From positions 516,688,958-516,752,957 of the forward strand of contig NC_133617.1 in NCBI RefSeq assembly GCF_048593235.1: a stretch of DNA of 64,000 nucleotides, read 5' to 3'. The notes under the pieces are model-generated. The model was not told where the DNA came from. It made no database searches and saw nothing but the letters and a program-made list of their open reading frames with translations. The position numbers were made by a program, and so were the translations under genes. Source of the stretch: Sminthopsis crassicaudata. Lineage: Eukaryota. This document shows, in pieces, positions 10,215 to 51,845 of this stretch; the stretch's first letter is position 1, and each line of letters begins with the position of its first letter.

Positions 10215-10458
10215 TAAGGCAGCTAAGTGCCTAGCGTAGAGTCAGGAAAACCTGAGTTCAAATGTTATTTCAAACACTTAATAGCTGTGTGAACCTGGGC
10301 AAGTCACTTAAACCTGTTTGCCTCAATTTCCTTATCTGCAAAATGAAGATAATAATAGCACCTGTCTCCCATAGTTGTCATAAGAATCAGATAAGATAAT
10401 AATTATAAGGTGCTTAGCACAGTGCCTGGCACATAGTAAATACCCTACAAATGTTAGT

Positions 10459-16750: not shown

Positions 16751-19559
16751 AATTTTCCTCTCCTTTCAAAAAGGGGGGGAACAGGGGGCATCCAGTCACT
16801 ACTTGTGTAAAAAGAAAACATTCTAAGGAATCAAAACAGTAAAAGTGCTAAGTTGAAAAACCATGGGTCTCTAAAGTCAGGGAAGCAGGTACAACAAATA
16901 TTGTTCCTGTGTGCTGGGTCTCAGCCCTGACTACAAGCCATAGTTTACTTATTGCCAACAAAATAACCAGATTTTATTGGGGATATTAACAGACCAAAGC
17001 AGGACCACTGGGTGGGTAAAAACCTGCATGGACAGGATGGCACCAGACAGCCTCACCCACTAACTGGAAGTGGTTTTCTGTTTTATGGAGCAAGAAGGAA
17101 TTGTAAAGTTTGCAGTTTTTAACTCAACAGAGTAAACCAAATCAACCCCATCTAAGATTGAACTCTGCAGACAATCTATATAATACAGGCCCTACTAGAC
17201 AGATTAAGACTTGCTTCCTTCTTATTTTTTTTTTTTTCTTGAGGAAGATAATATTCACTCTGAGGCAACTAAAGCTTATCTAGCTTTGAAGGTATGGAAA
17301 TATCTTCTTGAAAGAAAACCAGGACACATGGGCAATCAGTATTTCTTTTAAGCAAGGTGAATAGAAAGGGAGGGGACTTTTTCTTTTTTTGTGGTTTAGT
17401 CATTTCAGTCATATCCAACTCTCTTCATCCATCCCCTTTTTGGGATTTTCTTGGCAAAAGCACTGGAATGGTTTGCCATTTCCTTCTCTAGCTCATTTTG
17501 CAGATAAGGACACAGAAGTAAACAGAGTAAAGTGACTTGTCCAGGGTCATGTAGCTAGTAAATATCTGAAGACAGATTTAAACTCACAGGCTTGCTGATT
17601 TCAGGTCCAGCACTCTATCTGATGTCTGACCTTTCTAGTTTTTTCATTAGAATTCTTTCTCATGGGTATGACAAGGAGTGCTCCTTGTTCTAAGATGAAA
17701 TGTTGTCAGATAAACAGTACACTACTCTTGATCACTTAGTTACCCACTCATCCTTCAGAAGAGAGCTTTTATAACACAAAACCTTCTTCTCCATCAGCCT
17801 CAAACTGTTATTCTATCTCTTTCTGGTGTTCTCTGGAACACTGATCATATGATCAAACGAGGAAGCCCTTTGTTCCATCTAGCTTCAAGTAGTCCACATC
17901 TGGAGAGAAGGATCTTCAGAGTATAGCCTACAACATGCTATCTACAACATGTAACCCAGTGGTAAGAGGGAAGACAAATATTTATAAACTTGTCTTTTCA
18001 GCCAATGATTGCAGAAATGGTTGTAGACCCTTTAGTAAGATTAATGTTTTCAATCTTCATGGATCAACAAAGATTGTCACAAGTCCCTAGACTTGGAAGC
18101 TTGGTAAAACTAGAACTGAGACAGTGGCCTTTCTGAATCACTGCTGATATCATGTGGGTCATGATATACTGGATGGGAACTATCAATTAAGGAGATAAAA
18201 GTAAACAATACATAGTTGGTAATCAACATTAANNNNNNNNNNNNNNNNNNNNNNNNNNNNNNNNNNNNNNNNNNNNNNNNNNNNNNNNNNNNNNNNNNNN
18301 NNNNNNNNNNNNNNNNNNNNNNNNNNNNNNNNNNNNNNNNNNNNNNNNNNNNNNNNNNNNNNNNNNNNNNNNNNNNNNNNNNNNNNNNNNNNNNNNNNNN
18401 NNNNNNNNNNNNNNNNNNNNNNNNNNNNNNNNNNNNNNNNNNNNNAAAAAAAAGAACCAGTGATTATTTTTGATTATGGCACTTCACATCACAGGAACTA
18501 ACTCATTGCAGCCACAATACTATCAGAGTAGACCTTGTCATAACTGTGAGGGGCAACATGGAATGGTCACTAAATGACTATTTAGACATTAGGAAGACCA
18601 GAGTTGAAGTCCTGCCTCATACAAAAACTAGCCGGGTGATCATGAGCAAGTTGCTTAATTTCTAAGGGTCCCTCTATGTCTATAAATCAGCCCCAGCCTT
18701 GTCATTCTTCTTTGGAAACTGGGTGAATGTCTGCTAGACTGTTTTTGCCTTGTCCCTCTTTAGCACTCCCAGTCTGTGTGTATTAATCTTTAAACTCTGA
18801 GCCAGGGCAACTCCAGGAGTTAGTTAGGTCTTTTCTGGTGTCTAGCCATCAGCTGGCAGACAAATCAGGCCTAGCTCAGTGACTCAGTCCAGATGAACCT
18901 TTCCCAAAGCTGGACAGGCCCAAACTCACTCTGCTCACACAATGATTGCCAGTTTTAAAATTCCAGTTAAAGAAGAAAAAAAATAACTTCCACTCCTGGA
19001 GCTGCCACATAAAACAAAGATCCTAGGGAAATGCCTCACTGGAGAAATTCCTATGATGGTTACCTGAGCCTGAGCTCATGTATTGGAGCATAATATTTAG
19101 GGCAGGAAGAGGGAAAAAAATAAAAAGCAGACAAGCATTGGAATGAGAGAGTTCCTGGATTTTAGGCTTGGCATATTTCTGAACATTAGAGGTAGTTTTG
19201 CAGCCCAAGAATGTTTCCGATTAATATCACAGTCCTTCAGACGAATGGAATGTAAACCACATACCAATTATTGGAATCCCAGAAAGGAAACTCCCTTTTC
19301 CATCTGTCTATCCATCCAGTTGCCTGCCTACCCGAACACCCACCTACTCAGTGTCTTCTAAGACTTTCTCTCTTGAAGAGAGGAAAGGAAAAAATCTTGC
19401 TACTAGTATAGGTGTTCCTTGCTATTGATAATAGATGCTCCTATTTATGTTTTTTCCTCTTTCTTCCACTACCATTTATTCTTAAATGAATTCATTTAAG
19501 AAATATGCATTAGCATACAAAGACAAAAGTGAAATTATCTCTTCCCTTTGGATCCACAA

Positions 19560-21967: not shown

Positions 21968-22490
21968 AGCAATGGTTCTCAAAGTGTGGTCTGTGAACCT
22001 CTGCAGTACCTTTCAGGAGATCCATTGGGTCAAAACTATTTTTATATTAATACANNNNNNNNNNNNNNNNNNNNNNNNNNNNNNNNNNNNNNNNNNNNNN
22101 NNNNNNNNNNNNNNNNNNNNNNNNNNNNNNNNNNNNNNNNNNNNNNNNNNNNNNNNNNNNNNNNNNNNNNNNNNNNNNNNNNNNNNNNNNNNNNNNNNNN
22201 NNNNNNNNNNNNNNNNNNNNNNNNNNNNNNNNNTTTAAAATCATGCCACTTTTTCAACTAAAGTTTTTTTTAAAAAAATAGTTATTTGTCAAAAATTTGC
22301 TATTTATGTTAACATAATAGATTTGTTTTTACTTTAGTGAATTAATAAATATTTAAACAGTGTTTCCTTTTCATTTCTTAAAGAGTAAATATTGGGGGAA
22401 AAAAACCCATGTAAGCAAAAGCTTTTGGGTTTCTTAAATAAAAATTATGTAGTGCAAATACACACTGGGACCAAAAAGTTTGAAAATCTT
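21968..22490 (+). mobile_element. Charlie1-like hAT DNA transposon spanning an N gap
   Basis: caatggttctcaaagtgtggtc...ggtcaaaactattttt and terminal gaccaaaaagtttgaaaa. Confidence 0.75.
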
Positions 22491-27111: not shown

Positions 27112-28130
27112 TGTGTTTGGGGTTTAGCACCAAATATTGGAGTTTATGAAGAATTCACAATGGCCATTCTCTTTTGTATACTAAAGCTTTTTATGTTCAA
27201 AACATATGCACAGATAATTTTCAACATTCACCCTTGCAAAACTCTGTGTTCCATATTTTTCTCTGCCTTTCCCTCACCTACTCCCCTAGGTGGCAAGTAA
27301 TCCAATAGTTCCACAATTATGCTTACACAAGAAAAAAATCAGATCAAAAAGAAAAAAATGAGAAAGAAAACAAAATGCAAGCAAACAACAATAAAAAATG
27401 AAAATACTATATTGTGATCCACTCTCAGGCTCCACAGTCCTCTCTCTGGGTGTAGATGGCTCTCTTTATTACAAGATCATTGGAACTGGAATGGCCATTC
27501 TCTTTGACAAAAGGTAGGTTTATTTAGGATTAAAGATTACAAACAAAATGAAGAGATACAGTAGACACCAGGAATGGTAAATATGAAACAGAATATAAAT
27601 TGGCAAGGAAAGGGATTTTTAATAATCTCATTGGAAAAGAAAATTCCCTAGTAAAACTCACAATTAACTAGGAGAAAGAAAACACTCCATCACGTGGGAG
27701 TATGCCACTGATTGGCAGGCTAAATCCTAAAAGGGATTTAGCATCCTAAAAAAAATTAGCTATAAGGAGAAAGACACCATGAGGCATGATGAGGGAATGA
27801 GAAGACAGACACCACATGGCACAGGGGTAGGGGGAAGGCAAAACATAGTGGCAGACTGACTCAAAAGAGGGTTCAGTAAACATGACATGAGCCATGGACA
27901 GATTTATAGAGGAAATTTAACTTTAGGCATTTGGGAAACTTGGATTTCTGACTGGACATAGCAAGGTGGGGCTACCCACAACCTCCACAGAAGGTTGAAC
28001 TGATTTCCATCAGTGCCTTTCCCTGCTTGCCTCAAGGAGTAATTTTATGAACACTTCAAGCTCTCTCTGTCAACCCCATCTAGTTACTCAGGACCTCATC
28101 ATTGATATAGAAGTTGCAATTATTCCCATT
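27112..28130 (-). mobile_element. Solo LTR (family 1) interrupted by an L1 fragment
   Basis: Reverse-complement match to 1628-2375. Confidence 0.75.
27175..27489 (-). mobile_element. 5'-truncated L1 3'UTR with 16-bp TSD
   Basis: AATGGCCATTCTCTTT at 27159-27174 and 27490-27505; reads AAAGAG... in L1 orientation, fitting the L1 endonuclease site. Confidence 0.9.
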
Positions 28131-31254: not shown

Positions 31255-33365
31255 GTACATATTCAATATTGTATTAAAAATGTTAGCTTTGGCAATAAGA
31301 GAAGAAAAATAGATTAAAGGAATTAAAATAGGAACCAAATTATCACTTTTTGCAAATGATCTGATGGTATACATAGAGAATCTAGAAAATCAACTAAAAA
31401 CTATTAGAAATAATTTAAAACTTTAGCAAAGTTTCAGGATACAAAATAAATCCACATAAATAATCATATTTTTAAATATTACCAATAAAGTCCAAAAGTA
31501 AGAGATACAAAGAGAAATCCCATTTAAATCAACTGTCAATAGTATAAAATATTTGGGAATCTATCTGCCAAAGGAAAGTCAGGACCTATAATGAACACAA
31601 CTACAAAATACTTTTCATACAGATGAAGTCATATCTAAACAATTGGAAAATATCAATTGAATATGTCAAGCTAATATAATAAAGATGACAATACTACCTA
31701 AACTAATCTGTTTATTTAGTGCTACACCAATCAAACTCCCAAGAAATTATTTTACAGAGCTTGAAAAAATAACAACAAAATTCTTCTGGAAGAACAAAAG
31801 GTCAAGAATTTCAAGGGAATTAATGAAAAAAATGCAAATAAAGTGGCCTAGCTATACCAGATCTAAAAATAAGTAAAACTATTTATTTATTATAAAGCAG
31901 CAGTCATTAAAACCATTTGGTACTGGCTAAGAAATAGAGTAGTTGATCAATGGAATAGCTTAGGTTCACAGGACAAAATAGTTAATAACTATAGTAATTT
32001 AGTGTTTGACAAACCCAAAGACCCCAGCTTTTGGGATAAGAATTCACTATTTGACAAAAACTGCTGAAAAAATTAGAAACTAGTATGGTAGAAACTAGGC
32101 ATTGACCCACACCTAACACTACATACCAAGATAAGGTCAAAATGAGTTCATGATCTAGACATAAAGAATGATATTATAAATAAATTAGAAGAACATAGGA
32201 TAATTTACCTCTCAGATCTGTGGAGGAGGAAGAAATTTGTGACCAAAGAAGAAATGGAGATCATTATTGATCACAAAATAGATAATTTTTATTATATTGA
32301 GTTAAAAAGTTTTTGTACAAACAAAACTAATGCAAACAAGATTAGAAGGAAAGCAATAAACTGGGAAAACATTTTTAAATTCAAAGGTTCTGATAAAGAC
32401 TTCATTTATAAAATATATAGAGCACTGACTCAAATTTATAAGAATTCAAGCCATTCTCCAACTGATAAATGGTCAAAGGAAATGAACAGACAATTTTAAG
32501 ATGAAGAAATTGAAACTATTTCTAGTCATATCAAAAGGTACTCCAAATCACTATTGCTCAGAGAAATGCAAATTAAGACAACTCTGATATACCACTACAT
32601 ACACACCTCTTAGATTGACTAAGATGACAGAAAAAGATAATGACAAATGTTGGAGGGGATGTGGGAAAACTGGAACTGTGAATGGATCCAACTATTCTGG
32701 AGAACAATTTGGAACTGTGTCCAACGGGCTATCAAACTGTGCATACCTTTTGTTCCAGCAGTGTTTCTACTGGGCTTATATCCCAAAGAGATCTTAAAGG
32801 AGGGGAAGGGACCCACATGTATAAAAATGTTTATGGCAGCCCTTTTTTGTAGTGGCAAGAAACTGGAACCTGAGTGGCTGCCCATCTGTTGGGGAATGTC
32901 TGAATAAATTGTGGTATATAAATGTAATGAAATATTATCATTCTGTAAGAAATGACCAGCAGGATGATTTCAGAAAGGCCTGGAGAGACTTACATGAACT
33001 TTTGCTAACTGAAATGAGCAGAACCAGATCATTATGCACAGCAACAACAAGATTATATGATGATTAATTCTAGTGGACGTGGCTTTCTTCAACAATGAGA
33101 TGATTGAAGCCTGTTCTAATTGTTTAGTGATGAAGAGAGCCATCTACACTCAGAGAGAAGACTATGGGAACTGAGTTTGGATCACAATATAGCATTTTCA
33201 TTTTTTTGTTGTTGTTGTTTGCTTGCATTTTATTTTGCTTCCCATCTTTTTTTTTTCTTCTTCTTCTGGTTTGATTTGATTTTTCTTGTGCAGCAAGATA
33301 ATTGTATAAATATGTATGCATATTTTGGATTTAACATATATTTAACATTAAAAATTTTTAAAAAA
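31255..33365 (+). mobile_element. L1 ORF2 3' half and 3'UTR, decayed
   Basis: ORF fragments [27 protein letters not shown] and KSFCTNKTNANKIRRKAINWENIF; multiple stops and frameshifts. Confidence 0.95.
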
Positions 33366-35651: not shown

Positions 35652-36019
35652 CTTTAGAAAAAAAGGCACAAATATACTGAAATATACAAATACAGGATTG
35701 GCATATATATGCTTTCATTGTTTAGAGAAACAAGAAGTAATATTTACAGCATAATTATTCATTTAGAGAGAATTTGCTGATAAATATTGGAGAATAGGTT
35801 AGAGAATGGTATTAGAGAGTGCTATTATTTCTCTGACCCTTCCTTAGAACTAGCCACCAGAACCTACAAAAACAGTTTTGGAAGCCATGTCATTGCTGAT
35901 TCATAGTGAGTTTTCAGTATGCTAAAAGCTCCAGATTCTTTTCAGAAAAATAAAAACAAAGACAACTGCTTTCTATGTCTCCCCCCCCCATCTTGTATTT
36001 GTTGAACTGATTGTTTGTA

Positions 36020-36873
36020 TTGCCATACCTTATTTTATTGCACTTAGTTTTATTACTGCACTTTGTAGATTTTGATTTTTAAAAAATTTTTATATTTTTT
36101 TTGGTTGTGTTTTCTTTTTGGTTGTTTTTACAAAATGAATGTTTGTGGCAACCCTGTTTCAAGCAAATCTACTGGAACCATTTTCCCCTCAACTCTNNNN
36201 NNNNNNNNNNNNNNNNNNNNNNNNNNNNNNNNNNNNNNNNNNNNNNNNNNNNNNNNNNNNNNNNNNNNNNNNNNNNNNNNNNNNNNNNNNNNNNNNNNNN
36301 NNNNNNNNNNNNNNNNNNNNNNNNNNNNNNNNNNNNNNNNNNNNNNNNNNNNNNNNNNNNNNNNNNNNNNNNNNNNNNNNNNNNNNNNNNNNNNNNNNNN
36401 NNNNNNNNNNNNNNNNNNNNNNNNNNNNNNNNNNNNNNNNNNNNNNNNNNNNNNNNNNNNTTTAAGTAAAAGGGAGAATAAATTGCTATTAAATTATTTG
36501 TTGTCTTATTTTTAAAATTTGCAAAATAAGAAAAAGAAAAAAAGAAGAAATTGCCACAACCACTCCAACCTTCAGCTATTGCCACCCTGATCAGCAGTCA
36601 TCAAACACTGAAGTAGGACTCTCGGCTAGAAAAAAGAGCATGATTCACTGAAGGCTCAGATGATGGTTAGCATTTTTTAGCAATAGAGTATATTTTGATT
36701 ATGCACATTTTTTAGATATGATACTCTTACACACTTAATAAACTACAGTATAATGTAAACATAAATTTGATATGCATTGAGAAGCCAAAAAAATTATGTG
36801 ACTCACTTCAATGCAACATTCACTTTATTGCAATGGTCCAGAACCTAACTCCCATATCTCCATAGTATGCCTG
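36020..36873 (+). mobile_element. Tigger1-like TcMar DNA transposon, internally deleted, spanning an N gap
   Basis: 5' catacct-tattttattgcact...gtttgtggcaaccctg; 3' gaaattgccacaaccactccaaccttcag...gaaggctcagatgatggttagc...gtatgcctg followed by TA. Confidence 0.9.
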
Positions 36874-37064
36874 TACACAAACAAAAATTTTTATTATTTA
36901 TCTTGTTGTATTTCATCTTATTAGATTCAACCCAAGGCTATAGCCCAGGAGCTGTCCACTTGCTTTTGAAGATCCTACAAGTGAAGAAGGATTTTCATAT
37001 TCCTTAAAGCTTTTTTATATTTAAAAATATTTTTAAAAACCCTTCTTAGTTTGTGGGCTGTACA

Positions 37065-37800
37065 TAGAGGTAGTACATGGATTTGGCCTTCATGCTATCA
37101 TAATTTGCCAAAGCCTTTTTATCAATATCCTTTTGGAACTCAAATATGTTATCCAGTAGTCTGGCTGCTGCTTCCAGATTTATGTCATCTGTGAATATGA
37201 CAAGTATACCATCTATGATTTTATCCAAATCATTAACAAAAAATATTAAACAGGACAAAGCCAAGTAAAAATCCCTTGGTACTCCATTGGAAACCTCCTG
37301 CCACTCTGACGCCAAAGCATCATACATATCCCAGCTTAGCAAAATGTCTGGCATAGAGCAGATGCTTAATCATTGTATCACCTGATTGACTATTCTTAGA
37401 GTGCAGTAATTCAACTGGTTTTGAAGCCATCTGATTATCTGTTTATATTAGTATCTAATCCATATCTCTCCATCTTTACTACAGGAATAGTGATATTTCA
37501 TTAAAAGTTATATTCAAATCTAGGTGTATTATATCCACACTATCCCTTTATTCTATTTTTAGCAACACTGTGCAAAAAAAGAAAATGAAAACATTCTTTC
37601 AGGACTTATTCTTAATGAATTCATGTCAGTTCTTTGTAATCTCCACTCCCCTTCCTAGGTGCCAAGCATCTCTTTAACAATCCTGGTTAAAATTTTCTCA
37701 GGAATAGAAGCTAAACTCAGTGTCCAATAGTTGGTAGGCTCTTTTCCTTCCCTTTTGAAATATTTTTAACATTGCCTTTAACAATCTTATGTTTTTCTTC
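37065..37800 (-). mobile_element. CR1/L3 LINE RT fragment, with an L2 tail inserted at ~37325-37392
   Basis: EWQEVSNGVP...IFFVNDLDKIIDGILVIFTDDINL. Confidence 0.85.
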
Positions 37801-37895
37801 TTTTCCATGATCTTTCAAATATTATGCACAGCCACTTAGCAATCAGATCTGAGCTCTTTTAGTACCAAATGCAAATGATCTCTTAATTATGTGTG

Positions 37896-37950
<55 letters not shown>

Positions 37951-38949
37951 TGTGTGTGTATACGTATGGCATATGGCAGCCAGATGAAGTACTGGCCCTG
38001 GATTCAGGAAATCTTGATTTCAAATTCACCTTCAGATATTTACCACCTGTGTGACTCTGAGCAAGTCACTTAATCCTGTTTGTCTCATTTTCTCATCCTC
38101 TTAAAATGAGCTAGAGAAAGAAATGCAAACTATGCCAGTATGTCTGTGTGTATATATACATAATAAATATGTATACACACATATATTTTACACATACACA
38201 TACATACACACACAAGTATGAGGCAGTGTGAAAGTGATCATAAAAGTTTCTATTTTGTTAGAAATAAAACTATTACTTTGAAGGAAAGAAAAAATCTCTG
38301 ATTTAAAAGGATAATAAGGTGCTGGGAACTGGTATAGGGAAGGTAGAGGCTAGTGAGGATTTATAGCATCCAAGAAATAAGAAAAAAAGCAGGTCTCTTT
38401 GGAAGGGACTGCCTAAGCCCTACTGCAGCTGGGTATTTCTGGGATGGGTATTTGTTTAGCTTTCAGTGATTGAATGTACAAGGAGTTTGTGGGACATGAG
38501 GAAGCAAAAGAGTATTTTCATAGATTTGGAGCAGGAAGAAATCCAAGAGGTCATTAAGCAGAACTTCCTTCATTTTATAGATGAGGAATCTGTGTCCCAA
38601 TGAAGTTAATTGGCTTCACAGGACCATCCAGTATCAGAGGATTTGAATACAGGTCTTCCTGATAGAAATAACATTCTTATCTACTATAACAATTTAAAGA
38701 AGCAAATAAATAGTACATTTATCCCTACCATATTGTGAATATTAGAGGCATGGTGTCCCCATGATCTGGAAAATCCATTTAAAATTTTTTGGTCCTCTCT
38801 TTCTACCAAGAAAGAAGTCTCATTTTTTTCTTCTTTTTCTTTTATGAGTATTCTATTGTATTGTAAAAAAGGTAAAAAAATTATTGTACACACCTTATTG
38901 TAAAATTTGGGTTAAGTATTAAGTTATAGACTCAATGTAACAATAATAA

Positions 38950-40590
38950 TAAAATTATTATATTTTTGGAAGAACAAAATGTCAAGAATTTCAAAGGAAT
39001 TAATGAAAAAAAGTAAATGAAGGTGGCCTAAGCTGTATCAGATCTAAAATTATATTATAAAGCAGTAGTTATCAAAACCATTTGGTACTGGCTAAGAAAT
39101 AGAGTACTCAATCAGTGGAATAGGCTATGTTCACAGGTCAAAATAGTCAATGACTATAGTAATCTAGTGTTTGATAAACCCAAAGTCTCAAGCTTTTAGG
39201 ATAAGAAGTCACTATTTGACAAAAACTGTTGGGAAAATTGGAAATTAGTGTGGCTAAAACTCGGCATTGACCCACATCTGACACCCTATACCAAGATAAG
39301 GTCAAAATTGGTTCAAGATTTATACATAAAGAGTGATATTAAAAGCAAATTAGAAAAACAAAGGATAGTTTGCCTCTCAGATCTGTGGAGAAGAAAAAAT
39401 TTGTGACCAAAAAAGAACTGGAGTACATTATTTAATACAAAATGGATAATTTTTATTATATTAAGTTAAAAAGTTTTTGTACAATCAAACAAAACTAATG
39501 CAAACAAGACTGGAAGGGAAGCAATAAACTGGGGAAATTTTTTACATTCTAGGTTTCTGATCAAGGCCTCATTTCTAAAATATATGTAGAATTGACTCAA
39601 GTTTATAAGAATTCAAGCCAATGTCCAATTGATAAGTGGTCAAAGGATATGAACAAACAATTTTCAGATGAAAAAAATTGAAACTATTTATAGTCATATA
39701 AAAAGGTACTTTAAATCACTATTGATCAGAGAAATGCAAATTAAGACAATTCTGAGATACCACTACACATTTCTCAGATTGGCTAGGATGACAGGAAAAG
39801 ATAATGATAAATGTTGGAGGGGATGCGGGAATACTGAGACACCAATACATTGTTGATGAAGTTGTGAACTTATACAACCATTTTAGAGAACCATCTGGAA
39901 CTCTACCCAAAGGGCTATCACATGTGCATACCCTTTGATCCAGCAATGTTTCTATTGGATTTGTATACCAATGAGAATATAAAGGAGGAAAAGGGACTCA
40001 CGTGTGTAAAAATGTTTGTGGTAACCCTTTTTGTAGTGACAAGAAACTTGAAACTGAGTGAATGCCCATCAGAATATGTCTAAATACATTATGGTATATT
40101 ATTGTTCTATTAGAAAGGATCAGCAGGATGATATCAGAGAAGCCTGCAGAGACTTACATAAACTGATACTGAGGGAAGTGAGCAGAACCAGAAGGTCATT
40201 GTACATGGCAATAGCAAGATTATCCAATGATCAATTCTGACAGACATGACTCTTTTCAACAATGAGATGATTCAAGCCAATTCCAATGGTCTTGTGATGG
40301 AGGGGGCCAAACCAAAGAGAGGACTATGGGAACTAAGTGTGGATCACAGCATAGTATTTTCACTCTTTCTGTTGTTGTTTGCTTGCATTTTGTTTTTCTC
40401 ATTTTTTTTCTTTTTGATCTGATTTTTCTTGTGTAGCATGAAAATTGTAGAAGAATCGCACATATTTAACATATATTGGATTACTTGCTGTCTAGGGGAG
40501 GAGGGAAGGTGAAGGAAGAGGAAAAATTTGGAAATCTTAAAAGTTATCCATGCATATGTTTTGAAAATAAAAAACTTTAATAAAAAAAGA
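38950..40590 (+). mobile_element. L1 ORF2 C-terminus and 3'UTR, decayed
   Basis: KSLLIREMQIKTILRYHYT...KCWRGCG; G-rich 3'UTR and A-tail. Confidence 0.95.
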
Positions 40591-41099
40591 ATAGATGTAT
40601 GAGAGAGATTGTAGAACTTAAATAAAATTGGTCAGGTAAAATGAGAGCGAAAGGCAATACTGGAAAAAAAAATTTAGATTTGAGTGGGTCATTTTATATA
40701 ATCTTTGTCCAAGAACTCAAAAGAATGAAGATGTTACATGCTGTGTTTATTAGTAGCTAATATGGAAGAGGGTATCAGAATAAATGGTTCCCCATTAAAA
40801 AAATTTTGTTCTGATGTGTGGAAAGGTAGTTGGGAATAAGTAGACAATCTTTCTGATACAATTCAGGGATCATATAAACACACAGTAATTTATACCTTTC
40901 CTATCCTCAAGATGTCTCTCTCTCTCTTTTTTTTTTTTTTTTTTTTTTTTACAATGTGGCCCTACTGCTTCCTTTTTTTCCCCAGAAGAATATATATCTT
41001 TGATTTATGTTTTTCACCAATTCAACTTTTAGGATGTATTTCTAAAAATGATAAAAACTTCAAGTCAGGGGATAGTTAAGTTTTACAGTCTAAGGCTTA

Positions 41100-41760
41100 A
41101 TTAATAGGATCTGCATAGAAAAACCCAATATCATTAATTAGCAAAGCTTGTTAATATTAACTGTTACCACAAACAGTAGTAGAAACTTCAACAAATCTCA
41201 ATCTCCACTTTCCACAGTGAAAAAAGTCTTTCTCTAGGGCTATTCCTGAGTTTAATTTCCTTGAGAAGCTTGATCTTACAGGTTTTTTTTCTTCATCAGA
41301 ATGGATCAATTTGGCAACCAGGTGAACTATTTGGTTATGTGTTGGAAATTTTTATTTTTTTCTGATGAAATTGTCAGTCATCATTAATGTACGACTTTTT
41401 TGCTATCAATTTCCGGAAATAATGAAGAATGCCTTCATTGGAACCAAGTTCTAAAAGCTTGTTAATGCTTGCTGGTACTTTTCTTTGAATGCATTGAGCA
41501 CAGCATTGTATGACAAAATATCTGCTGCCATTCTAGGCCAACAATATCTGTTCCTTAGCAATTTCAGGGTTCTCTCTGGACCCATCTGTCCAAAGTCATC
41601 ATAGAGTGATATTATATTGGGTAGCACCAACTCCTTTTAGAATGTGTAAGAATCACAGTCTGGTGCAGAATTCCATAGCATAGCTCCAATTTCTGCCATT
41701 GACAACAAAAGGGAAACATTTTGTAAATGGAACTTGAATCCTTTTATAAATCACCCCCTT
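41100..41760 (-). pseudogene. Gypsy integrase zinc-binding and core domains (decayed)
   Basis: WQKLELCYGILH; ELVLPNIISLYDDFGQMGPERTLKLLRNRYCWPRMAADILSY / QCCAQCIQRK; LEL...TLMMTDNFIR; LIHSDE...KLLKEI. Confidence 0.88.
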
Positions 41761-41818
41761 GCCTCTTAACTCGTATCATTTCTCACAATTCATTGTCAGT
41801 AAAGAACTCTCATCTCAG

Positions 41819-42201
41819 CCAAATCGGTTCCAATAGAGCAGTAATGAACTGAACCAGCTACACCCAGCGAAAGAACTCTGGGAGATGACTATGAACCACT
41901 ACATAGAATTTCCAATCCCTCTAATTTTGTCCATCTGCATTTTGGATTTCCTTCACAGGTTAATTGTACACTATTTCAAAGTCCAATTCTTTTTGTTCAG
42001 CAAAACAATTGTTTGGTCATGTATACATATATTGTATTTAATTTATACTCTAACATATTTGACATGTATTGGTCGACCTGCCATCTGGGGGGGGGGAGAG
42101 GAAGGAGGGGGAAAATTGGAACAAATGGTTTGGCAATTGTCAATGCTGTAAAATTACCCATGCAAATATCTGGTAAATAAAAACTATTATATATATAAAA
42201 A
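41819..42201 (+). mobile_element. 5'-truncated young L1 (3'UTR only) with 18-bp TSD
   Basis: AAAGAACTCTCATCTCAG at 41801-41818 and 42202-42219; G-rich tract, AATAAA and A-tail. Confidence 0.93.
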
Positions 42202-42399
42202 AAAGAACTCTCATCTCAGTTATTCAAAAGCAACAGAGGTAGAGAGAGTTCGATGAAACAGAGTTCAAGTTTGCTGTTGGCATCCTGTCAGTTGGAAGTC
42301 TTTAGTTCTTTGCTACATTCCCTCTTGATTGTGTTTCAGATATCTAGAGATTGTATAAACATAGAGTAACTTTAACTATTTCCTTAATTATTATTATAT

Positions 42400-42665
42400 C
42401 TTCAATATCATAAGGCATTTTTGTCTTCTCTGACCAGCAGTATATGCTGAATTTATAATAGAATTCCTGCCTATCTCTAGCAAATAGTATCTAATTTAGC
42501 ACTGATCACAATATATGTTGATGGATCCTCCTCGGTCCATTTGGAAGTTTATTCCATATAGTCTCTGACCTTTTCAGTGACAAGCCACTTCAAAACCAAG
42601 GACTTGGATTTATGTATGGAGAGTCAAGAAGTTATCTTCTGGCAAATGTAATTGGTTTCTGATGA
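42400..42665 (-). pseudogene. Gypsy RNase H domain (decayed)
   Basis: KPITFARR / IHKSKSLVLKWLVTEKVRDYM / DPSTYIVISAKLDT / YYKFSIY resembles RPVAFASR...AHKLEFLALKWAVTEKFHDYLYG...NPLTYILTSAKLDAT...YNFSIQY. Confidence 0.9.
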
Positions 42666-42674
42666 ACGTCACTT

Positions 42675-43470
42675 TCTTGACACTCATCATAATCATATTT
42701 TCTTATAGAACATTAATATTCCATGATGTGGTCTACATCTTGTTTAGTCATTTTCCAATTAATGAAGAGATATTTTGCTTCCAGTTCTTTATTGAAACAA
42801 AAAATGAGAAACAAAGTTATTTTTAATTGTTTTTATTAAAGCTTCTTATTTTCAAAACATATGCATAGATACTTTTCAATATTCAGCCTTACAAAACCTT
42901 GTGTTCCAAATTTTCCCTCCCAGGAATCCAATATATGTTAAACATGTACAGTCCTTCTATACATATTTCCACAATTATCATGTTGACAAGAAAAATCAGA
43001 TCAAAAAGGAAAAATTGAGAAAAAGCAAAATGCAAACAAACAACAACAAAAAGACTGAAAATACTATGTTGCAATCCATATTCATCCTTTCTCTGGGTGC
43101 AGATGGCTCTCTTCATTCCAAGACCGTTGGAACTGGCCCAAATCATCTCATTGTTGAAAAAAACCACATCCATCAGAATTGATCATTTGTGTTGCTGTTT
43201 CTATGTAGAATGTTTTCAATGGTTCTGCTCAGTTCACTTATGTCAGTTCATATAAGTCTCTCTAGACCTTTTTGAAGTCATCCTCCTGATCATTTCTTAT
43301 AGAACAATAATTTTCTATAACATTCATATACCATAACTTATTCAGCCATTCTCCAACTGATGGGCATCCACTCAGTTTCCAGTTTTTTGCCACTACAATA
43401 AGGGCTGCCACAAACATTTTTGTACATGTAGTCCCTTCTCCTCTTTTATGCTCTCTTTGGGATTCAAAGA
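42675..43470 (-). mobile_element. L1 3' fragments (older piece ~42675-42790, younger piece ~42816-43470) interrupting the Gypsy pol
   Basis: Reverse complement of the marsupial L1 ORF2 end and 3'UTR; similar to 32800-33300. Confidence 0.85.
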
Positions 43471-43850
43471 AACATCATTCTTAATAAATTTACAATAACT
43501 GCCAAATATGGGAAAGTGCTAACATATCAGATTCTATGTATATGACTAATTCAAGAATATTTCTATCTTCTCTGGGTCAGGGTTCATGGCTTGCTGAGAT
43601 TTACCTCCTTAACTGAGGCTCTACAAAAGACTCTACAAATTGACAGCTTGTCAATTGACAGCTTTATAGCAGTTTTCTTTAGCATAGCTAACACTTTCAC
43701 ATTCTCTTTTTATGTTTTTCTAATATTTCCCCAAAGACAGTGAGGTCATTTACAAACACTGACACTTTCAGATATTGTATCCCTCTATCCACTTTTCCAA
43801 GGAGCCATTGTAAAGTGGCAGGTGCTTATGAAATACCTTCAGATACATAC
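43470..43850 (-). pseudogene. Gypsy RT catalytic and C-terminal segment (YxDD decayed to FVND at 43745-43756)
   Basis: EGIS*APATLQWLLGKV...VFVNDLTVFGEILEKHKKRM / VKVLAMLKKTAIKLSIDK / FCRASVK / PDPEKIE...FGSYCKFIKN. Confidence 0.9.
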
Positions 43851-43856
43851 ATGTGG

Positions 43857-43995
43857 CTAGATAGATAGATATATAAATGGATAGACAGATGATAGAGAGA
43901 TATGATAGATATGTTTATGCATATGTATGTATACATATATATATGCATACATATTCACAAGTATTTCTCTGTATGTATATGTATGTATATATGTA
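43857..43995. repeat. (TAGA)n/(TATG)n compound microsatellite
   Basis: Direct reading. Confidence 0.85.
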
Positions 43996-44758
43996 TGAAT
44001 CTACCCATTGGAATGGGGCTTTCTAATTGTAGATCAATTTTCTATATTTATATAAGGACTCAGATAAGTTGGGAAAAGTAAGAAAGAGAAGAGTACTTCA
44101 GTTCTCTCCAAGTTTTGAGTATGTTTAGACTTTCTTTGAGTTGTTAAGTCTCTGGTCTAGTTTTTAGCTTTGAATAAGAAGATTGAGAAAACCAAACCTA
44201 CTTCAGGTCACAGAAAGAAAAGATTCTAAGAAGGCATGAGAGGAGCTAGAAATCTCCATCATATCCCTATCGCCAACTTGCTACATTAGAAATTTTGGGG
44301 AACTTTCCCTTGGCTAAGAATTAAGATTCTCTCTTTCTTGATTGAGCTGAGTTATTTCCCTCTCAATGAGAAAGAGAGCTCTTTCAATTTATATTATATG
44401 GTGTATAGTTTTCTGTGCATAGTATTTCTGTTTTCTGTTTTGCTACCAATTTGGATAAATGGTTTTTCTTGGCTAAGTGCTTTGTGTGTTCATTTTGGCA
44501 CTGATATTGAAAGGAAGGGGAGTAATCTCAGATATAGAATTTGTGGTCCTGCTTCTTCCAATAATAATCAGAAGTTAGCTTGAACCTGAAAATCTAATTC
44601 CCTAGACTAGCAATATTTAAGGGAAAAGACAGATATAATTCTTGCCAGTATTCCATAGCAGAGAAAAGAATGAACCCCTGGCTAATTCCCTGTTCTAACA
44701 TCCCTCTGCAACATGTGGAAGCATGGTTCTTTCTACATGTGGGGTCTTGTCACCTACA
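43996..44758. mobile_element. LTR-like element (family 2) inserted into the Gypsy RT
   Basis: TG...CA ends. Its reverse complement matches ~775-1290 (e.g. agctcctctcatg...ctgaagtagg...caaagctaaaa). Gypsy RT codons resume on both sides. Confidence 0.6.
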
Positions 44759-44777
44759 CACACACATATGTATGTAG

Positions 44778-44909
44778 GTAGTTAAATTGATAAAATTTAC
44801 TATGCAGATAAAAGAAGTATTTTCTTTGTTTTCATCAATTATAGAAATTTGATGGTATTCACTTCACAAATCTAATATTAGAACCACTGGCTACCTAACA
44901 GACAATCCA
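44778..44909 (-). pseudogene. Gypsy RT middle segment (decayed)
   Basis: LDCLLGSQWF, a frameshift, then ILDL*SEYHQISIIDENKENTSFICIVNF resembles LDCLSGSQWFSVLDLRSGYYQI...DKEKTAFICPLGFYQF. Confidence 0.9.
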
Positions 44910-44916
44910 GGTCATC

Positions 44917-45033
44917 CCCCATTAACACTGTAAAGTCCTTTAGGATAGGGAATTTTTTATATTTTTTTTACCTTTAGCACTTAGCACAGTGCCTGGCTCA
45001 TAATAGATGCTTAATAAATGTTTTTTGTTGATT
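44917..45033 (+). mobile_element. L2 3'-end fragment inserted into the Gypsy RT
   Basis: L2 tail 'cacttagcacagtgcctggctcataatagatgcttaataaatgttttttgttgattg'. GGTCATC occurs on both sides (44910-44916, 45034-45040). Confidence 0.8.
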
Positions 45034-45040
45034 GGTCATC

Positions 45041-45375
45041 TCTCTTAGCATGATGTATTGGTTTTCCTTTAGTGTTCTTGTTCAAAGACTGATATTCAAC
45101 TCACATTTTTCAAGATTTCCATTTTTCTATAACATCAATGAAGGTCATGCAGAGAATCCAATCAGTTAGCAGTTCTTTGAGATGGCCTTGACTTTCCTGA
45201 TCAACTCCTCTTGAAGATTAATTCCAAAACCTCTCTTTTATTTTCATCATATTTTATATTTTTGAATAACCAAAGCAGTATCCTGAGTCATAACCTTGCT
45301 ATATTTTAATCTATAATTCCCCAACTCTTGTATATGTCTTTCCAATAATTCTATAATGTCCCTGATTTTTATACT
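45041..45375 (-). pseudogene. Gypsy RT N-terminal segment (decayed)
   Basis: QESQGHLKELLTD...FIDVIEKWKS*KM*VEYQSLNKNTKGKPIHHAKRDD resembles the Gypsy pattern RQHLxELL...PIVVVRKKNGSIRMCVDYRTLNKRT...PRIDD. Confidence 0.8.
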
Positions 45376-45384
45376 TTGCATACA

Positions 45385-45581
45385 CTTTTTTTTTAATTGT
45401 ATTTTATTTTATTTTGTTTGTTTTTATTTTATTTTATTTTATTTTTTTCTGAGGCTGGGGTTAAGTGACTTGCCCAGGGTCACACAGCTAGGAAGTGTTA
45501 AGTGTTTGAGACCAGATTTGAACTCTGGTCCTCCTGAATTCAAGGCTGGTTTTCTATCCATCGCGCCACCTAGCTGCCCCT
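45385..45581 (-). mobile_element. WSINE1-like CORE-SINE with (AAAAT)n tail
   Basis: Reverse complement of ggggcagctaggtggcgcgatggataga...cttaaccccagcctca; ATACACTTTT on both flanks. Confidence 0.9.
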
Positions 45582-47713
45582 GAATACACTTTTAAAAATT
45601 GGAAGATTTATAAACTTCTACTTTCTCAACATGACATGTATTTCAAGCAAATTAGAGCACATTTCAATAGAATGACCTATTATAATAATACTCAATAAAT
45701 GAAATATGCTTACTTAAGTACTAAGCATGCAATTACAACCACATAATAAAACATGCAAGTGACACCCAACAAACATTAAATCAAACATATAAATAAATAG
45801 CAATGCAATAATAAGAGCAGTTTCATCCATAAACCAACAATTAATAAAGAATTATGCATGACATTATATAAATCAAGTCACTTTACATATATACACACTT
45901 ATTAAAATACATATGCAATACTACAAATAGGATCACTGAGAGTGGCTTTATATTTATATTTTTTATTAATGCAGCAGCAGATAGAAGCTCAAGGAGAAAA
46001 AGAAATGACATAAAATATGATTAATATGACTGATGTGTTTTCAAAGGGTTTAAAATATTTTTAAAAAATTAAACAAAGCCAAATTAAAACATTAAATGAA
46101 TTATTTATTGAAGCAATTCAGGATTGAGCAAATATATAAACTCTTTTAAATTAGAAAATCCCCCCCCAATTTAAGGAAGTAAAGGAAAGAAAACTGTTTT
46201 GCAAAGTAGAGTGTACTCAGTGTTAGTGCTTCACTAGCCTTTATAATATGAAACAAGCCTGTACAAAAGAAAATAAAGCTCTTAGATAAAGCTCCTACAT
46301 TTTACCATCTGGAGTATTGAGGTTGTGGAGCTGTTTTAGTTGGGTAATGTTACTCTACCAATCACATATGCTCAGTTGGAGGCTTTCAGCTTGGCTATGA
46401 CACTTACTATATAGAAATACATGCACTTCCCAATTTTTTTAGAAGGTTAAGTTCAGAAACAGCAGCAGAAGTAAGCTGGGCTGCCAAGTGCTCTAAATCC
46501 TAGAAAATAGGCATAAGCATCTGCTTTCCTGCTGCCAGTGTGACATGTCATGCAACTCATTATGGGTACCTCTCTGGGTCCCAAATAATTTTTATGATGG
46601 TTCAGAAGCACTAAGCAGTTCTCAATAACTCTGAGTTGCTGTCTCTAACATCCAGCTCAATTCCTCCTGAATACCACTTTTCCAAGGTTCCTAGAAAAAG
46701 CATCTCTGTTTTCTTCACTAAACTGTGAGTAATAATCCAGCAGGGCCAGAATCACTGACAAATATATTTTAAGGTATATAAATAAAATCTAAACTGAAAG
46801 TAGAAAGAGAGATTGTGGACTATGGGTCTAGTCCTTAAAGAATAATAAATATTTTCTGTTTGGTGCTTAACTCAAGTGAAGATTTGGTGAACTGGTTTTC
46901 AGAAATGTTTAATGAATGGAAGGGCCTTTCCTCTCTACTTCAGAGCATGCACAGATATCCTTTAACTGTTTACTTTGGAGTGATGAAATACTTTTTAATT
47001 GACAACTGATCCAGAACTAAGGGTGAGAAGGAAAAAGAACTGTTATGGGATTCAAAGTATAATAGGGACTTTAGGTCCTCTCTCTCTTGACTGGTTACTT
47101 GAATCTTATGTTTCTGTCATATTTATTCTTTTCTGCTCTTAAGTGAATGAACATCAGAGATGGAATGAATTGAAAGTTCAAATGAGCCACCAGAGGTACC
47201 AGTCTTCCTTGAATACCCGATATATCTCATTTCAACAGATAACAGATAAAGAACAAAGAAGGGAGGTAAAAGGAGTCCATGGAACCTAGGAGAAGAAACC
47301 TAGGTTTCTTCCATATTAAATATATGGTTAGGAACTATAGACCACTGGTTCTCTCGTTCTCTCTTCTTGCTCTTGTTCTTGAACTAGAAACCTCTTTTTT
47401 CTGGAAATTCCCCAGATTCCCCCACCCTAGCTATGTTGTATACAACATTTGTCTTAATTTGGCTATTTTCATTAGCTCCTTCCTGGAAAACAATGCCAGG
47501 GTCAAAGATAACCTTCTTTGGGCTTGGACAGGTAGATTGGAAAGGAAAGATATTTGCCTAAATCCAAAGGTAGCTCTTCTAAATCCCTTTCTCTTGAGTT
47601 GTTAACTCTGAGAACTATATCTAAGATACAGTTACACCCACTAAAATAATCCTTGAGCAAACATTTGCTCATAAACCTCAAAACTATATCCAAAATGGAC
47701 ATGCCATATATAC

Positions 47714-47752
<39 letters not shown>

Positions 47753-49051
47753 AAGGTACTATTGAAAAAGTGACATGTGAGTTAAACAAAGGAAAAAAAT
47801 CTGATCAATATCTATTTTTAAAAACTAATTTATCAGCCCAAATTAGCACTCGAGAAAAGATAGCATCTTGTAGTCCTGGAAAAACTTGACTGATAATTAT
47901 TTTCCATAAATTCTTATATAGTTCATCTCTATTTTTTCCTTCAATTTCCAAAATAAGTAGTTATCACATTATGCTGGACAAACATACTTCTTTTCTTCTT
48001 TCTTCTTGTTTGAATAAAGATAATTCTTTATGTAGTTTCCATTTGCATTATTCATGGGATTTAGTATAGATCATTGGGACTTCAGAAAGGGCTTAGGTTG
48101 GCTGTTTCAAAAGCAAATCAGATCTACACTGATTTACTCAACTGTTATTTTAATAGAGTTTTGAATGAGTTGGAGTTTTCATCTCTTCATAAAAATATTT
48201 GAACACAGCTGTTACTCTCCATCCTGCCACCCATATGCTTATACTTTTAAACATGATTTGAACTTAAAGCAATTTCCATATATAAAAATTCTTTAGCAAA
48301 GTCCCATTTCCAACAACAATATTCTCATGTGTATCTTCTACTTTTTATATTTTTATTATTAATTAACTTATTAAATTGCAGTTTCCTGATGTTCTTGCTT
48401 TGTACTATTTGGAAATAGTACCCCGCCCTTTGGCTTAAAGGTATCCCAGCTTGGCACAATACAGTAAAAATTTAGGCTGAATATCTAATATGTATTTCAA
48501 GGAATATATTTTACTTGATTATGACAGCATATAGAGTTTTCTCTGCCAAATACACAGTGCCTTTATTAGAATTTTCAAATGGTACTCAATTCCCTTAAGA
48601 CATTTTCTATGTATCTTATGATACTTGTTTCCAAAATCTATATCATACTTCTAGTATAAACTTGATAGTTGTTGGATAATTGAATCCTAAAAGCAATAAG
48701 AAAATTGAAAAAATAAAGGAGAAAGGAACAATAGGAGGAATAAAGGGAAGAAAAAACAGAAGAGGAAGAAAAGTATGTCCCTGGATTTATTTTTTGCTTT
48801 CTAGACATATCAATTAACTCTATATCCTAACTAGGAGAACTAGATTTTTCAACTTTCACATCTACCACAAAAAGATCATAGGGCTTAGAGAAAACCTAGA
48901 TCACTACCATCATTTTTATAGATGAGAAAACTGAGGTCTATGCCTAGGAAGGTAAAATGACTTCTCCAAGTTCTAATAGTTAACTAATAGAGTTCCAAGT
49001 CATGTTCTTTCTCAGTCCACAGTCATTTTATGCATTTTTAAAAAAATAATA

Positions 49052-49793
49052 ACTTTTTATTTTCAAAATGCATGCAAAGATAGTTTTCAATATTCATCCT
49101 TGTAAAACTCCATGTTCCAAATTTTTCTTCCTTCCTCTCTTCTCTTCACCTCTTCCCCTAGACAGCAAGTACTTCAATATATGTTAAACATGTGCAATTC
49201 TTCTATACATATTTCCACAATTATCATGTTGACAAGAAAAATCAGATCAAAGAGGAAAAAATTGGAAAAAAAACCAAAATGCATGGAAACAACAACAAAA
49301 AGACTGAAAATACTATCTATATTCGTCCTTTCTCTGGGTACAAATAGCTCTCTTCATCACAAGACCATTGGAACTGGCCCAAATCATCTCATTGTTGAAA
49401 AGAGCCATGTCCATTAGAATTGATCATTTGTGTTGCTGTTGCTATGTAGAATGTTCTCATTGGTTCTGCTCACTTCATTTAGTATCAGTTCATATAAATC
49501 TCTCCAGACCTTTCTGAAGTCATTCTGCTGATCATTTCTTATAGGACAGTAATATTCTATCATCTTCATATACCCCAACTTATTCAGCCATTCCCCAACT
49601 GTTGGCATCCACTCAGTTTCCAGTTCCTTGCCACTACAAAAAGGGATGCTACATTTTTGCACATATGGGTCCTTTCCCCTCTTTATGATCTCTTTGAGAT
49701 ACAGACTCAGTACAGACACTGCAGGATCAAAGACTATGCACAACTTGATAGTCCTTTGAGCATAGTTCCAATTTGCTCTCCGGAATAGTTGAA
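49052..49793 (-). mobile_element. L1 3' fragment
   Basis: ORF fragment CIVFDPAVSVLSLYLKEII...WRDLYELILNEVSRT plus 3'UTR. Confidence 0.92.
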
Positions 49794-50104
49794 ATCTAGG
49801 TCAACTAATGCTGGTCCAACACAAACTTCAACAACTCCCCGGAGGTACCAGAAGTATGTGATTTGGCAAGGTAGAAATGTAATAAATGCATTAGAAAAAT
49901 AATTTAGGTAAAAACTCCAAATACCACAGTACTTTCTAGTGTTTGAAGTAGAGAAGTATTCTGAAAAAACCCATAAAATTTTAGAATTAGAATTTACCTC
50001 AGCAGCCATCTAATCTGATCTACACTCAAAAATGTTATAGCTACTACAATATTCCTGATAAAGAAGTAATCTAGTCTCTGTTTAATGACTTTTGAGTAAA
50101 AGAC

Positions 50105-51845
50105 TTAGATGACTTGATTCAAAGTGAAAATGAGCAGAACCAAGGGAGCATTTGTACATAGTAACAGCAATACTGTACAGTTATTAACTATGAATGATAT
50201 AGCTATTCTCAACAATTCAATGATCTAAGACCATTTCAAAGGACAAATGTTATCCACACCTAGAGAAAGAACTGGTAGAATCAGAATCCAGATGAAAGTA
50301 TACTGTTTTCCCTTTCTTTATATTTTTGTGAGTTTTTTCCTTTTGATCTTTCTTCTTTCACAACTAATATGGAAATATGTTTTACATGATTACATATATG
50401 TAACCTATATCAAATTGCTTTACCATTTTAGGAAGAGGGAGAAAAGAGCATAAGGTTTTGCAAAAGTGAATGCTGAGTTAGTATGGCAGAAATTAGATAT
50501 GGACCCACACTTAACACCATATACCAAGATAAAATCAAAATGGGTCCATGATTTAGGCATAAAGAATGAGATCATAAATAGATTAGAGGAACAGGGAATA
50601 GTCTACCTCTCAGACCTGTGGAGGAAGAAGGAATTTATGACCAGAGGAGAATTAGAGATCATTATTGATCACAAAATAGAAGATTTTGATTACATCAAAC
50701 TAAAAAGTTTCTGTACAAATAATACTAATGCAAACAAGATTAGAAGGGAAGTAACAAATTGGGAAAATATTTTTAAAAGCAAAGGTTCTGACAAAGGTCT
50801 CATTTCCAAAATATATAGAGAACTGACCCTGATTTATAGGAAACCAAACCATTCTCCAATTGATAAATGGTCAAGGGATATGAACAGACAGTTCTTAGAT
50901 GATGAAATTGAAACTATTTCCACTCATATGAAAGAGTGTTCCAAATCACTACTGATCAGAGAAATGCAAATTAAGACAACTCTGAGATACCACTACACAC
51001 CTGTCAGATTGGCTAAGATGATAGGAACAAATAATGATGAATGTTGGAGGGGATATGGGAAAACTGGGACACTGATACATTGTTGGTGGAGTTGTGAAAG
51101 AATCCAGCCATTCTGGAGAGCAATTTGGAACTATGCCCAAAAAGTTGTCAAACTGTGCATACCCTTTGACCCAGCATTGCTGTTATTGGGATTATATCCC
51201 AAAGAAATACTAAAGAGGGGAAAGGGACCTGTATGTGCCAAAATGTTTGTGGCAACTCTTTTCGTTGTAGCTAGAAACTGGAAGTTGAATGGATGTCCAT
51301 CAATTGGAGAATGGTTGGGTAAATTGTGGTATATGAAGGTTATGGAATATTATTGCTCTGTAAGAAAGGAGGAATACAGAGAGGCTTGGAGAGACTTAAA
51401 TCAACTGTTGCTGAGTGAAATGAGCAGAACCAGAAGATCACTATACACTTCAACAACAATACTGTATGAGGATGTATTCTGATGGAAGTGGATATCTTCA
51501 ACATAAAGAAGATCCAACTCACTTCCAGTTGATCAATGATAGACAGAAATAACTATACCCAGAGAAGGAACACTGGGAAGCGAATGTAAATTGTTAGTGC
51601 TACTGTCTATCTACCCAGGTTACTTATACCTTCGGAAGCTAATAATTAATGTGCAACAAGAAAATGGTATTTACACACATATATTGTATCTAGGTTATAT
51701 TGTAACACATGTAAAATGTATGGGATTACCTGCCATGGGGGGGAGGGAGTGGAGGGAGGGAGGGGATAATTTGGAAAAATGAATAAAAAAAAAAGTGAAT
51801 GCTGAGAACTATCTTTACATGCATTTGGAAAATAAAATGCTGTCA
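50105..51845 (+). mobile_element. Older L1 3' end hosting a nested young L1
   Basis: agtgaaaatgagcagaacc...; its 3'UTR resumes after 51806 (aactatctttacatgcatttggaaaataaaa). Confidence 0.8.
50478..51790 (+). mobile_element. Young 5'-truncated L1 with uninterrupted ORF2 C-terminal frame
   Basis: ORF 50466-51482 (338 aa) contains the L1 ORF2 cysteine-rich end (CWRGYGKTGTLIHCWWSC). 16-bp TSD AAAAGTGAATGCTGAG at 50462-50477 and 51791-51806. Confidence 0.96.

Follow-up and report, generated by a model that had tools for sequence, protein, structure and literature searches.

To our knowledge, all active Gypsy elements have been lost in mammals, where only scarce, broken relics survive alongside a few dozen domesticated genes. 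We describe here one such relic, a Ty3/Gypsy pol fossil in a 64,000-nucleotide stretch of contig NC_133617.1 of the marsupial Sminthopsis crassicaudata (the window; all positions are counted from its first letter), and compare it with its closest described relatives. Mammals keep only rare, highly fragmented fossils of the Metaviridae (Kokosar and Kordis 2013, PMC3670739), and the domesticated genes have been assigned to several progenitors: the Barthez clade for the PNMA family, chromoviruses for PEG10 and the RTL/SIRH genes, and Gmr1 for GIN1, KRBA2 and SCAND3 (PMC3670739, Table 1). PNMA is related to Gypsy12_DR, whose gag gave 14 tblastn matches in opossum and 20 in tammar, mostly remnants; from gag data alone, retrotransposition after the marsupial/eutherian split was argued for (Iwasaki et al. 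2013, PMC3789554). Reptiles, amphibians and fish still have active metaviruses whose gag is of the PNMA type, with the RBD-CA-NC arrangement (Henriques et al. 2024, PMC11011659). Gypsy was found in the monotreme, marsupial and placental genomes analysed by Chalopin et al. (2015, PMC4350176). In human, its traces include MamGyp-int, the MamGypLTR families, LTR85/88/104 and X1-X4_LR (Kojima 2018, PMC5753468), and >80 pre-amniote Gypsy protein fossils, some of the ancient ones exapted (Frith 2022, PMC9004415). The open reading frame (ORF) of PNMA2 corresponds to the gag of MamGyp-int, and RepeatMasker labels the PNMA2 coding exon as MamGyp-int (10.1101/2023.02.09.527862). The fossil described here is very probably a dead, partly deleted Ty3/Gypsy (Metaviridae) pol that belongs to, or is sister to, the lineage with a PNMA-type gag (Barthez or Gypsy12_DR-like; below, the PNMA-gag lineage), lying on the minus strand from ~44946 (perhaps 45200) to 41292.

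The window is AT-rich (GC 29–41%) and rich in marsupial-type L1 and tRNA/MIR-type short interspersed element (SINE) sequence; within the fossil stretch the ORFs reach at most 97 codons, and L1 sequence accounts for the longer of them. All 3489 stop-free pieces from the six-frame translation of the whole window were searched with two profiles, the first built from 70 Gypsy gag-pol proteins and the second from 40 closer relatives. The five best matches to the first profile were all on the minus strand, running from 44863 to 41454 in ascending profile order. With the second profile the seven best were all fossil blocks on the minus strand and again in profile order, namely 44967–44881 (profile positions 911–923), 44863–44753 (930–953), 43825–43700 (966–1007; E = 9e-7), 43709–43587 (1008–1034), 42623–42552 (1195–1216), 42548–42480 (1225–1241) and 41636–41454 (1421–1455; E = 2.4e-8). 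An eighth piece, covering positions 1456–1474, ranked slightly lower. The domain order is thus reverse transcriptase (RT), RNase H and integrase, with profile positions ascending from 911 to 1474.

When 121 proteins (P0019 and 120 relatives) were compared with the whole window by tblastn, the matches were confined to the minus strand of the fossil region, with best E values of 4.7e-13 (integrase), 6.2e-7 (RNase H) and, in RT, 3.9e-7 and 4.6e-6. No match at E<1e-3 was obtained elsewhere in the window with ~370 Gypsy queries in all. Translation of the minus strand of 40300–45700 into stop-free pieces showed that the motifs which had first drawn attention to the locus are spread over three minus-strand frames. 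With the intervening L1 fragment removed, RNase H and the integrase zinc finger are separated by ~452 nt, as compared with 501 nt in the reference; this conserved spacing indicates that the blocks are parts of one original gene.

RT is represented by two well-supported blocks. The first (44792–44946, minus strand) covers the relatives' LDxLxGSxWF and LDLxSGYHQI...KTAF motifs, with tblastn E values of 1.4e-6 to 4.6e-6 at 48–59% identity; it falls at positions 911–923 and 930–953 of the second profile and contains one stop and one frameshift. LDCLLGSQWF reads at 44910–44881, within the longer reading MGDDLDCLLGSQWF at 44922–44881, and SEYHQISIIDENKENTSF follows on the same strand from 44863 onward. 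The second block (43549–43846, minus strand) spans GxxAPATFQ, the catalytic box, KLSxxKCxF and DPEK, with a tblastn E value of 1e-8 and profile E values of 9e-7 (43825–43700) and 0.037 (43709–43587); two stops and two frameshifts interrupt it. APATLQ reads from 43825 onward, APATLQWLLGKV...VFVNDLTVFG is found in 43825–43700 and KLSIDKLSIC in 43709–43587. The catalytic box is FVND in the fossil and YxDD in its relatives. Further upstream, 45043–45200 on the minus strand is a possible N-terminal RT block, with SGxxRPSQ and a KDGxLRxCVDYRxLN-like reading that are collinear with the chain; its tblastn matches are weak and not significant (E 15–17), and it was matched by neither profile. Between the RT thumb and RNase H, ~100 codons are absent.

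The RNase H block (42480–42683, minus strand) corresponds to HKLEFLALKWxVTEKFxDYLxG...TDxxPLTYxxxSAKLDA in the relatives and was matched by 119 of the 121 queries (best E 6.2e-7). It contains three stops, occupies positions 1195–1216 and 1225–1241 of the second profile, and includes LKWLVTEK within 42623–42552 (longer reading LVLKWLVTEKVRDYME); the first ~40 bases of 42480–42683 may belong to the L1 fragment instead. The linker from RNase H to integrase is unrecognisable. Beyond it, 41292–41800 (minus strand) holds the N-terminal half of integrase, comprising the pre-finger region, the H2C2 zinc finger and the start of the core, with tblastn E values of 4.7e-13 and 2.8e-11. Four stops and small deletions interrupt this block, both histidines of the zinc finger read Y and Q and the Cys pair is lost, and the DDE core can be aligned only up to its second Asp (IHSDE). 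Even so, the 61-residue piece at 41454–41636, which reads LYDDFGQMGPERTLKLLRNRYCWPRM and includes the motif YDDFGQMGPERT, matches Pfam Integrase_H2C2 (PF17921) with E = 1.4e-7, its 32 bits exceeding the curated cut-off of 25.5. A phmmer search of 1.84 billion representative proteins with this piece gave 20 matches at E<=1e-3, the best at 1.1e-16. Most were proteins with repeated H2C2 domains; P0018 and P0019, the only two that could serve as references for pol, are Gypsy polyproteins with RVT_1, RT_RNaseH_2, RT_RNaseH, Integrase_H2C2 and rve.

The initial annotation had proposed RT, RNase H and integrase blocks in order on the minus strand, forming a dead Ty3/Gypsy pol hidden by stops, frameshifts and nested inserts. 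Profiles, tblastn and Pfam agree with it, and the matches to hidden Markov models are significant, both for Integrase_H2C2 and for the custom profiles (E down to 2.4e-8). Its description of the pol as near-complete does not hold. Only 289–293 residues can be placed on the reference pol, in which RT to integrase spans ~780 residues, so that 38% of the span is represented; gag, protease, the integrase C-terminal part and long terminal repeats (LTRs) are missing. Neither the profiles nor relaxed tblastn gave anything significant in the window for gag, protease or the integrase C-terminal part. The proposed outer limits, 45375 and 40760, must also be drawn in: the 5′ part from 45375 to 45043 gave insignificant tblastn matches only (E 15–17), and nothing significant was found below 41292.

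To which Gypsy lineage does the fossil belong? The best RT match among the 121 proteins was a Rana temporaria protein, P0035, and a search seeded with its pol region retrieved a lineage of vertebrate elements, present in teleosts, sturgeon, a ray and the frog genera Xenopus, Ascaphus, Spea and Hyperolius; in many of its members gag contains the Pfam domains PNMA (PF14893) and PNMA_N (PF20846). In hmmscan, P0246 and P0242 matched PNMA with E values of 7e-48 and 5e-46 and PNMA_N with 1.7e-7 and 3.8e-16, and both have PNMA_N, PNMA, RVT_1, RT_RNaseH, Integrase_H2C2 and rve. Summed over collinear tblastn matches to the fossil, the 117 queries of this PNMA-gag lineage had a median score of 170 bits (maximum 238), while the median was 85 bits (maximum 142) for 116 queries of the P0019 lineage (molluscs and others) and 41 bits (maximum 89) for 120 queries of the P0018 lineage, many of them with zf-MYND. 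For trees, fossil residues were set column by column from tblastn alignments, with stops and breaks as gaps. FastTree (LG+gamma, 60-sequence pol alignment) placed the fossil with the PNMA-gag lineage with support 1.0; when, as a guard against alignment bias, it was aligned through a reference from the other lineage, it became sister to the whole PNMA-gag lineage with support 0.91. Over its own columns the fossil is 40% identical to the PNMA-gag lineage and 34% identical to the other.

Several observations weigh against this placement. The position of the fossil within the PNMA-gag lineage is poorly supported (0.68 in FastTree), and its terminal branch, at 2.1–2.6 substitutions per site, invites long-branch artefacts. 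The lineage-defining PNMA domain is not present in this copy, which has no gag. The comparison covered three Gypsy lineages. Finally, neither LTRs nor a target-site duplication of the element itself was found, the direct repeats of 36000–50000 and a blastn comparison of 40000–46500 with the window yielding L1, SINE and simple repeats only. Absence of LTRs is nevertheless not evidence against a Gypsy origin, because it is expected after such decay.

The fossil might derive instead from a clade outside those three (chromovirus/Sushi, Gmr1, Mag, Cigr2 or Osvaldo) or from an unnamed one, the PNMA-gag lineage being only the nearest of the three that were retrieved. In keeping with this idea, the PNMA-gag lineage was not the first to come up when the zinc-finger piece was used in an unbiased search, and the copy offers no gag by which to identify it. 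We regard such an origin as distinctly unlikely. The score of the PNMA-gag lineage is twice that of the next lineage, tree support is 0.91–1.0, and the 42% of columns at which the fossil still matches the lineage-majority residue would, given an estimated halving by decay, correspond to an original identity of ~80%, like the members' own 83%.

Membership of, or sisterhood to, the PNMA-gag lineage is thus the reading that we prefer. The nearest relatives are fish, frog and ray elements, as expected from the likeness to fish and amphibian Gypsy noted in the initial annotation. That annotation went on to suggest a poorly described lineage, a suggestion that we do not uphold: the lineage is the well-studied PNMA progenitor (Barthez), related to Gypsy12_DR, and earlier work found remnants of it in both opossum and tammar (PMC3789554). 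Fragmented mammalian Metaviridae fossils have already been described (PMC3670739, PMC9004415, PMC5753468), and the present one, real and fairly ordinary, adds a further copy to a documented kind.

Endogenous retroviruses far outnumber Gypsy relics in mammals and their pol has the identical RT–RNase H–integrase order, so a retroviral pol fragment deserves consideration. We find this highly improbable. With the E limit raised to 10, the zinc-finger piece still matches PF17921 and none of the retroviral integrase families; all significant protein matches that have both RT and RNase H are pol proteins of the Gypsy type, with RT_RNaseH/RT_RNaseH_2; and in the alignments the RNase H block falls directly on the RT_RNaseH region of Gypsy elements. 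Searches of PDB sequences with two pieces returned no retroviral chain, an uninformative result, as they gave chance matches only, to PPR and designed TPR proteins.

The pol fossil might alternatively have been domesticated, as an exon derived from pol or as a regulatory element retained by selection, in the manner of GIN1, KRBA2 or the conserved Gypsy fossils described by Frith (2022). Some ancient human Gypsy fossils have indeed been exapted (PMC9004415), and two related organisms (B and C) share 9% of the 31-mers of 41200–41800 with the window. This sharing indicates an orthologous copy ~7% divergent, which shows no more than that the fossil predates a shallow split, and a divergence of ~7% looks neutral for close relatives. 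Every block has stops and frameshifts, catalytic and zinc residues are lost, and four younger insertions have been tolerated inside the fossil. No sequencing run recorded as RNA was found to contain the fossil stretch, and Rfam returned no family for 36000–52000. We give domestication very little credence; the fossil is non-functional today, and no sign of function was seen.

That the motifs are chance matches in AT-rich DNA is a practically negligible explanation: most pieces (24–42 residues) are too short for Pfam, which gave no match for nine of 10 single pieces and nothing useful for five further ones, but single pieces reach E values of 2.4e-8 and 9e-7 over the whole window, the seven best-ranked of the 3489 pieces share a strand and follow the order of the profile, and hundreds of queries found nothing comparable elsewhere in the window. 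A separate integrase-core-like tblastn match at 63756–63649 (minus strand; P0246 residues 1544–1579) had an E value of 0.66, two stops and no profile support, and is probably due to chance.

The pol blocks are separated by nested insertions, whose limits in the initial annotation proved largely sound: 41819–42201 was exact, 42675–43470 corresponds to an L1 3′ end and 44917–45033 holds a MIR-like fragment, and only 43857–44770 needed correction, to ~43847–44791. The clearest insertion is a young L1 3′ UTR (untranslated region) fragment of 383 bp with a poly(A) end (41819–42201, plus strand), flanked by a perfect 18-bp target-site duplication at 41801–41818 and 42202–42219. The duplicated 18-mer, AAAGAACTCTCATCTCAG on the plus strand, occurs exactly twice in the window, and the fragment matches the L1 tails at 53752–54073 and 51677–51781. 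This is a textbook nested case, which allows exact excision in silico.

L1 3′ end sequence also makes up 42684–43469 (minus strand), in two pieces: 42830–43468, and an older fragment of the ORF2 C-terminus at ~42684–42830. It translates to the L1 ORF2 C-terminal motif NWKLSGCPSVGEWLNKLWYMNVIENYCSIRND and is 81% identical to 49053–49703; its identity to three further L1 copies is 72–76%. The nested L1 pieces differ by 19–28% from other copies and are therefore much younger than the fossil.

Within RT, the 945-bp insertion at 43847–44791 lies between reference residues 972 and 978, the references having five residues there. It is bordered at both ends by microsatellites, (TAGA)n and AT/GT-rich, and has tandem repeats at 43858–43954; its segment 44162–44371 has a 68% identical inverted copy at 863–1068. 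The insertion is some repeat, possibly a solo LTR. A MIR-like SINE fragment occupies 44950–45040, in which 44980–45022 matches 10413–10455 (81%) and 37335–37376 (76%). It is flanked by an imperfect duplication of 35–39 bp (45035–45090 and 44895–44952), CTAAAGGA…GATGAC, whose local alignment score of 24 exceeds all values from 300 shuffles (maximum 21, mean 12.5). Because the flanks of the MIR-like insert are duplicated, the RT motif K(D/E)xY..R.DD reads on both of its sides. For a SINE target-site duplication, 35–39 bp is unusually long.

How old is the fossil? The residue held by most members of the lineage is matched at 42% of columns by the fossil and at 83% by living members. The fossil has ~10 stops in ~303 codons and several frameshifts, and its longest stop-free block piece is 61–64 codons long. 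In a simple AT-biased simulation of neutral change, 42% matching and ~10 stops both fit a divergence (d) of ~0.3 substitutions per site, a minimum value, since alignment was limited to the best-preserved blocks. Generic neutral rates in mammals are 1–2.2e-9 per site per year. We infer an age of roughly 140–300 million years, Mesozoic or older, a range compatible with insertion either before or after the therian split, so that a record from therian ancestors, as suggested in the initial annotation, is only one possibility.

The history of the locus may then be envisaged as follows. The element would have been copied into the germ line in the Mesozoic by its own RT and integrase, and the copy would then have decayed neutrally, to the extent of roughly 0.3 substitutions per site, with loss of gag, protease, the RT–RNase H junction, the integrase C-terminal half and recognisable LTRs. 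A MIR-like SINE, the 945-bp repeat and at least three L1 fragments would have been inserted later.

Insertion in the marsupial lineage after its split from the eutherians is possible, although we rate it as rather unlikely. If true, it would provide direct pol-level evidence that the metavirus progenitor of PNMA (Barthez) transposed in early marsupials, and the family might be absent from the eutherian-based MamGyp consensus library. More generally, a marsupial pol relic of the PNMA-progenitor lineage could help to date the end of transposition by that lineage, could test for separate activity in marsupials and eutherians, and could anchor trees that have so far rested on gag alone. For the present its usefulness is that of a data point in repeat annotation and palaeovirology.

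Other repeats surround the fossil. L1 3′ ends at 39960–40595, 27170–27489, 32780–33342 and 49053–49703 occur in both orientations and are 72–81% alike, the first of them delimiting the sequence downstream of the fossil. A SINE of tRNA origin, with a core that resembles MIR (GGGGCAGCTAGGTGGCGC…), is present at 45388–45580, 57691–57886, 62401–62511, 57269–57362 and 10242–10314 (77–86% alike); the copy at 45388–45580, with an A-rich tail, adjoins the 5′ limit first proposed for the fossil. On the plus strand, 50454–51479 has 342 stop-free codons that at first resembled an RT match; the frame encodes the C-terminal part of L1 ORF2 (…IQIKTTLRYHYTPVRLAKM…CWRGYGKTGTLIHCWWSCE…), matches no Pfam family, and represents the 3′ portion of a comparatively young L1. 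Runs of N occur at 4472–4708, 18233–18445, 22055–22233 and 36197–36460, and seven of the 10 listed ORFs of >=110 aa overlap them and are artefacts.

Comparison with known systems places the locus as follows. The Sushi-ichi-like chromoviruses, progenitors of PEG10 and the RTL/SIRH genes, are likewise Metaviridae that have left fossils and domesticated genes in therians. According to the literature they form a different clade, chromovirus as opposed to Barthez (PMC3670739, Table 1), and their chromodomain sits in the C-terminal part of integrase, which is absent from the fossil. The nearest of the three lineages compared has a PNMA-type gag, which the literature assigns to Barthez; by implication the fossil is probably not Sushi-like, as the initial annotation held.

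MamGyp-int, MamGypLTR and MamGypsy2-I also represent highly decayed Gypsy sequence, internal sequence in particular, in mammals. The fossil may correspond to the Repbase MamGyp-int, a link drawn from the literature only (10.1101/2023.02.09.527862, PMC5753468); the MamGyp families were defined mainly on eutherian genomes, and the fossil might belong to a relative on the marsupial side. PNMA-MS1 (M-PNMA) and the marsupial Gypsy12_DR-like remnants share with the fossil both retrotransposon lineage and host group, but they are derived from gag, one of them being an expressed gene, whereas the fossil is derived from pol and is dead.

The closest counterparts are the living PNMA-type elements of fish, amphibians, reptiles and rays, exemplified by P0246, P0242 (Astyanax), P0035 (Rana temporaria) and the Xenopus and Ascaphus proteins. 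These have an intact gag-pol of ~1950–2000 residues with a PNMA_N + PNMA gag; in the fossil, by contrast, ~290 codons can still be aligned, and gag, protease, the C-terminal part of integrase, LTRs and an intact catalytic site are all missing. Nevertheless, it resembles them in the motifs of RT, RNase H and integrase and in the order of these domains, and despite its decay it remains 40–43% identical to them over ~290 aligned residues, with scores of up to 238 bits.

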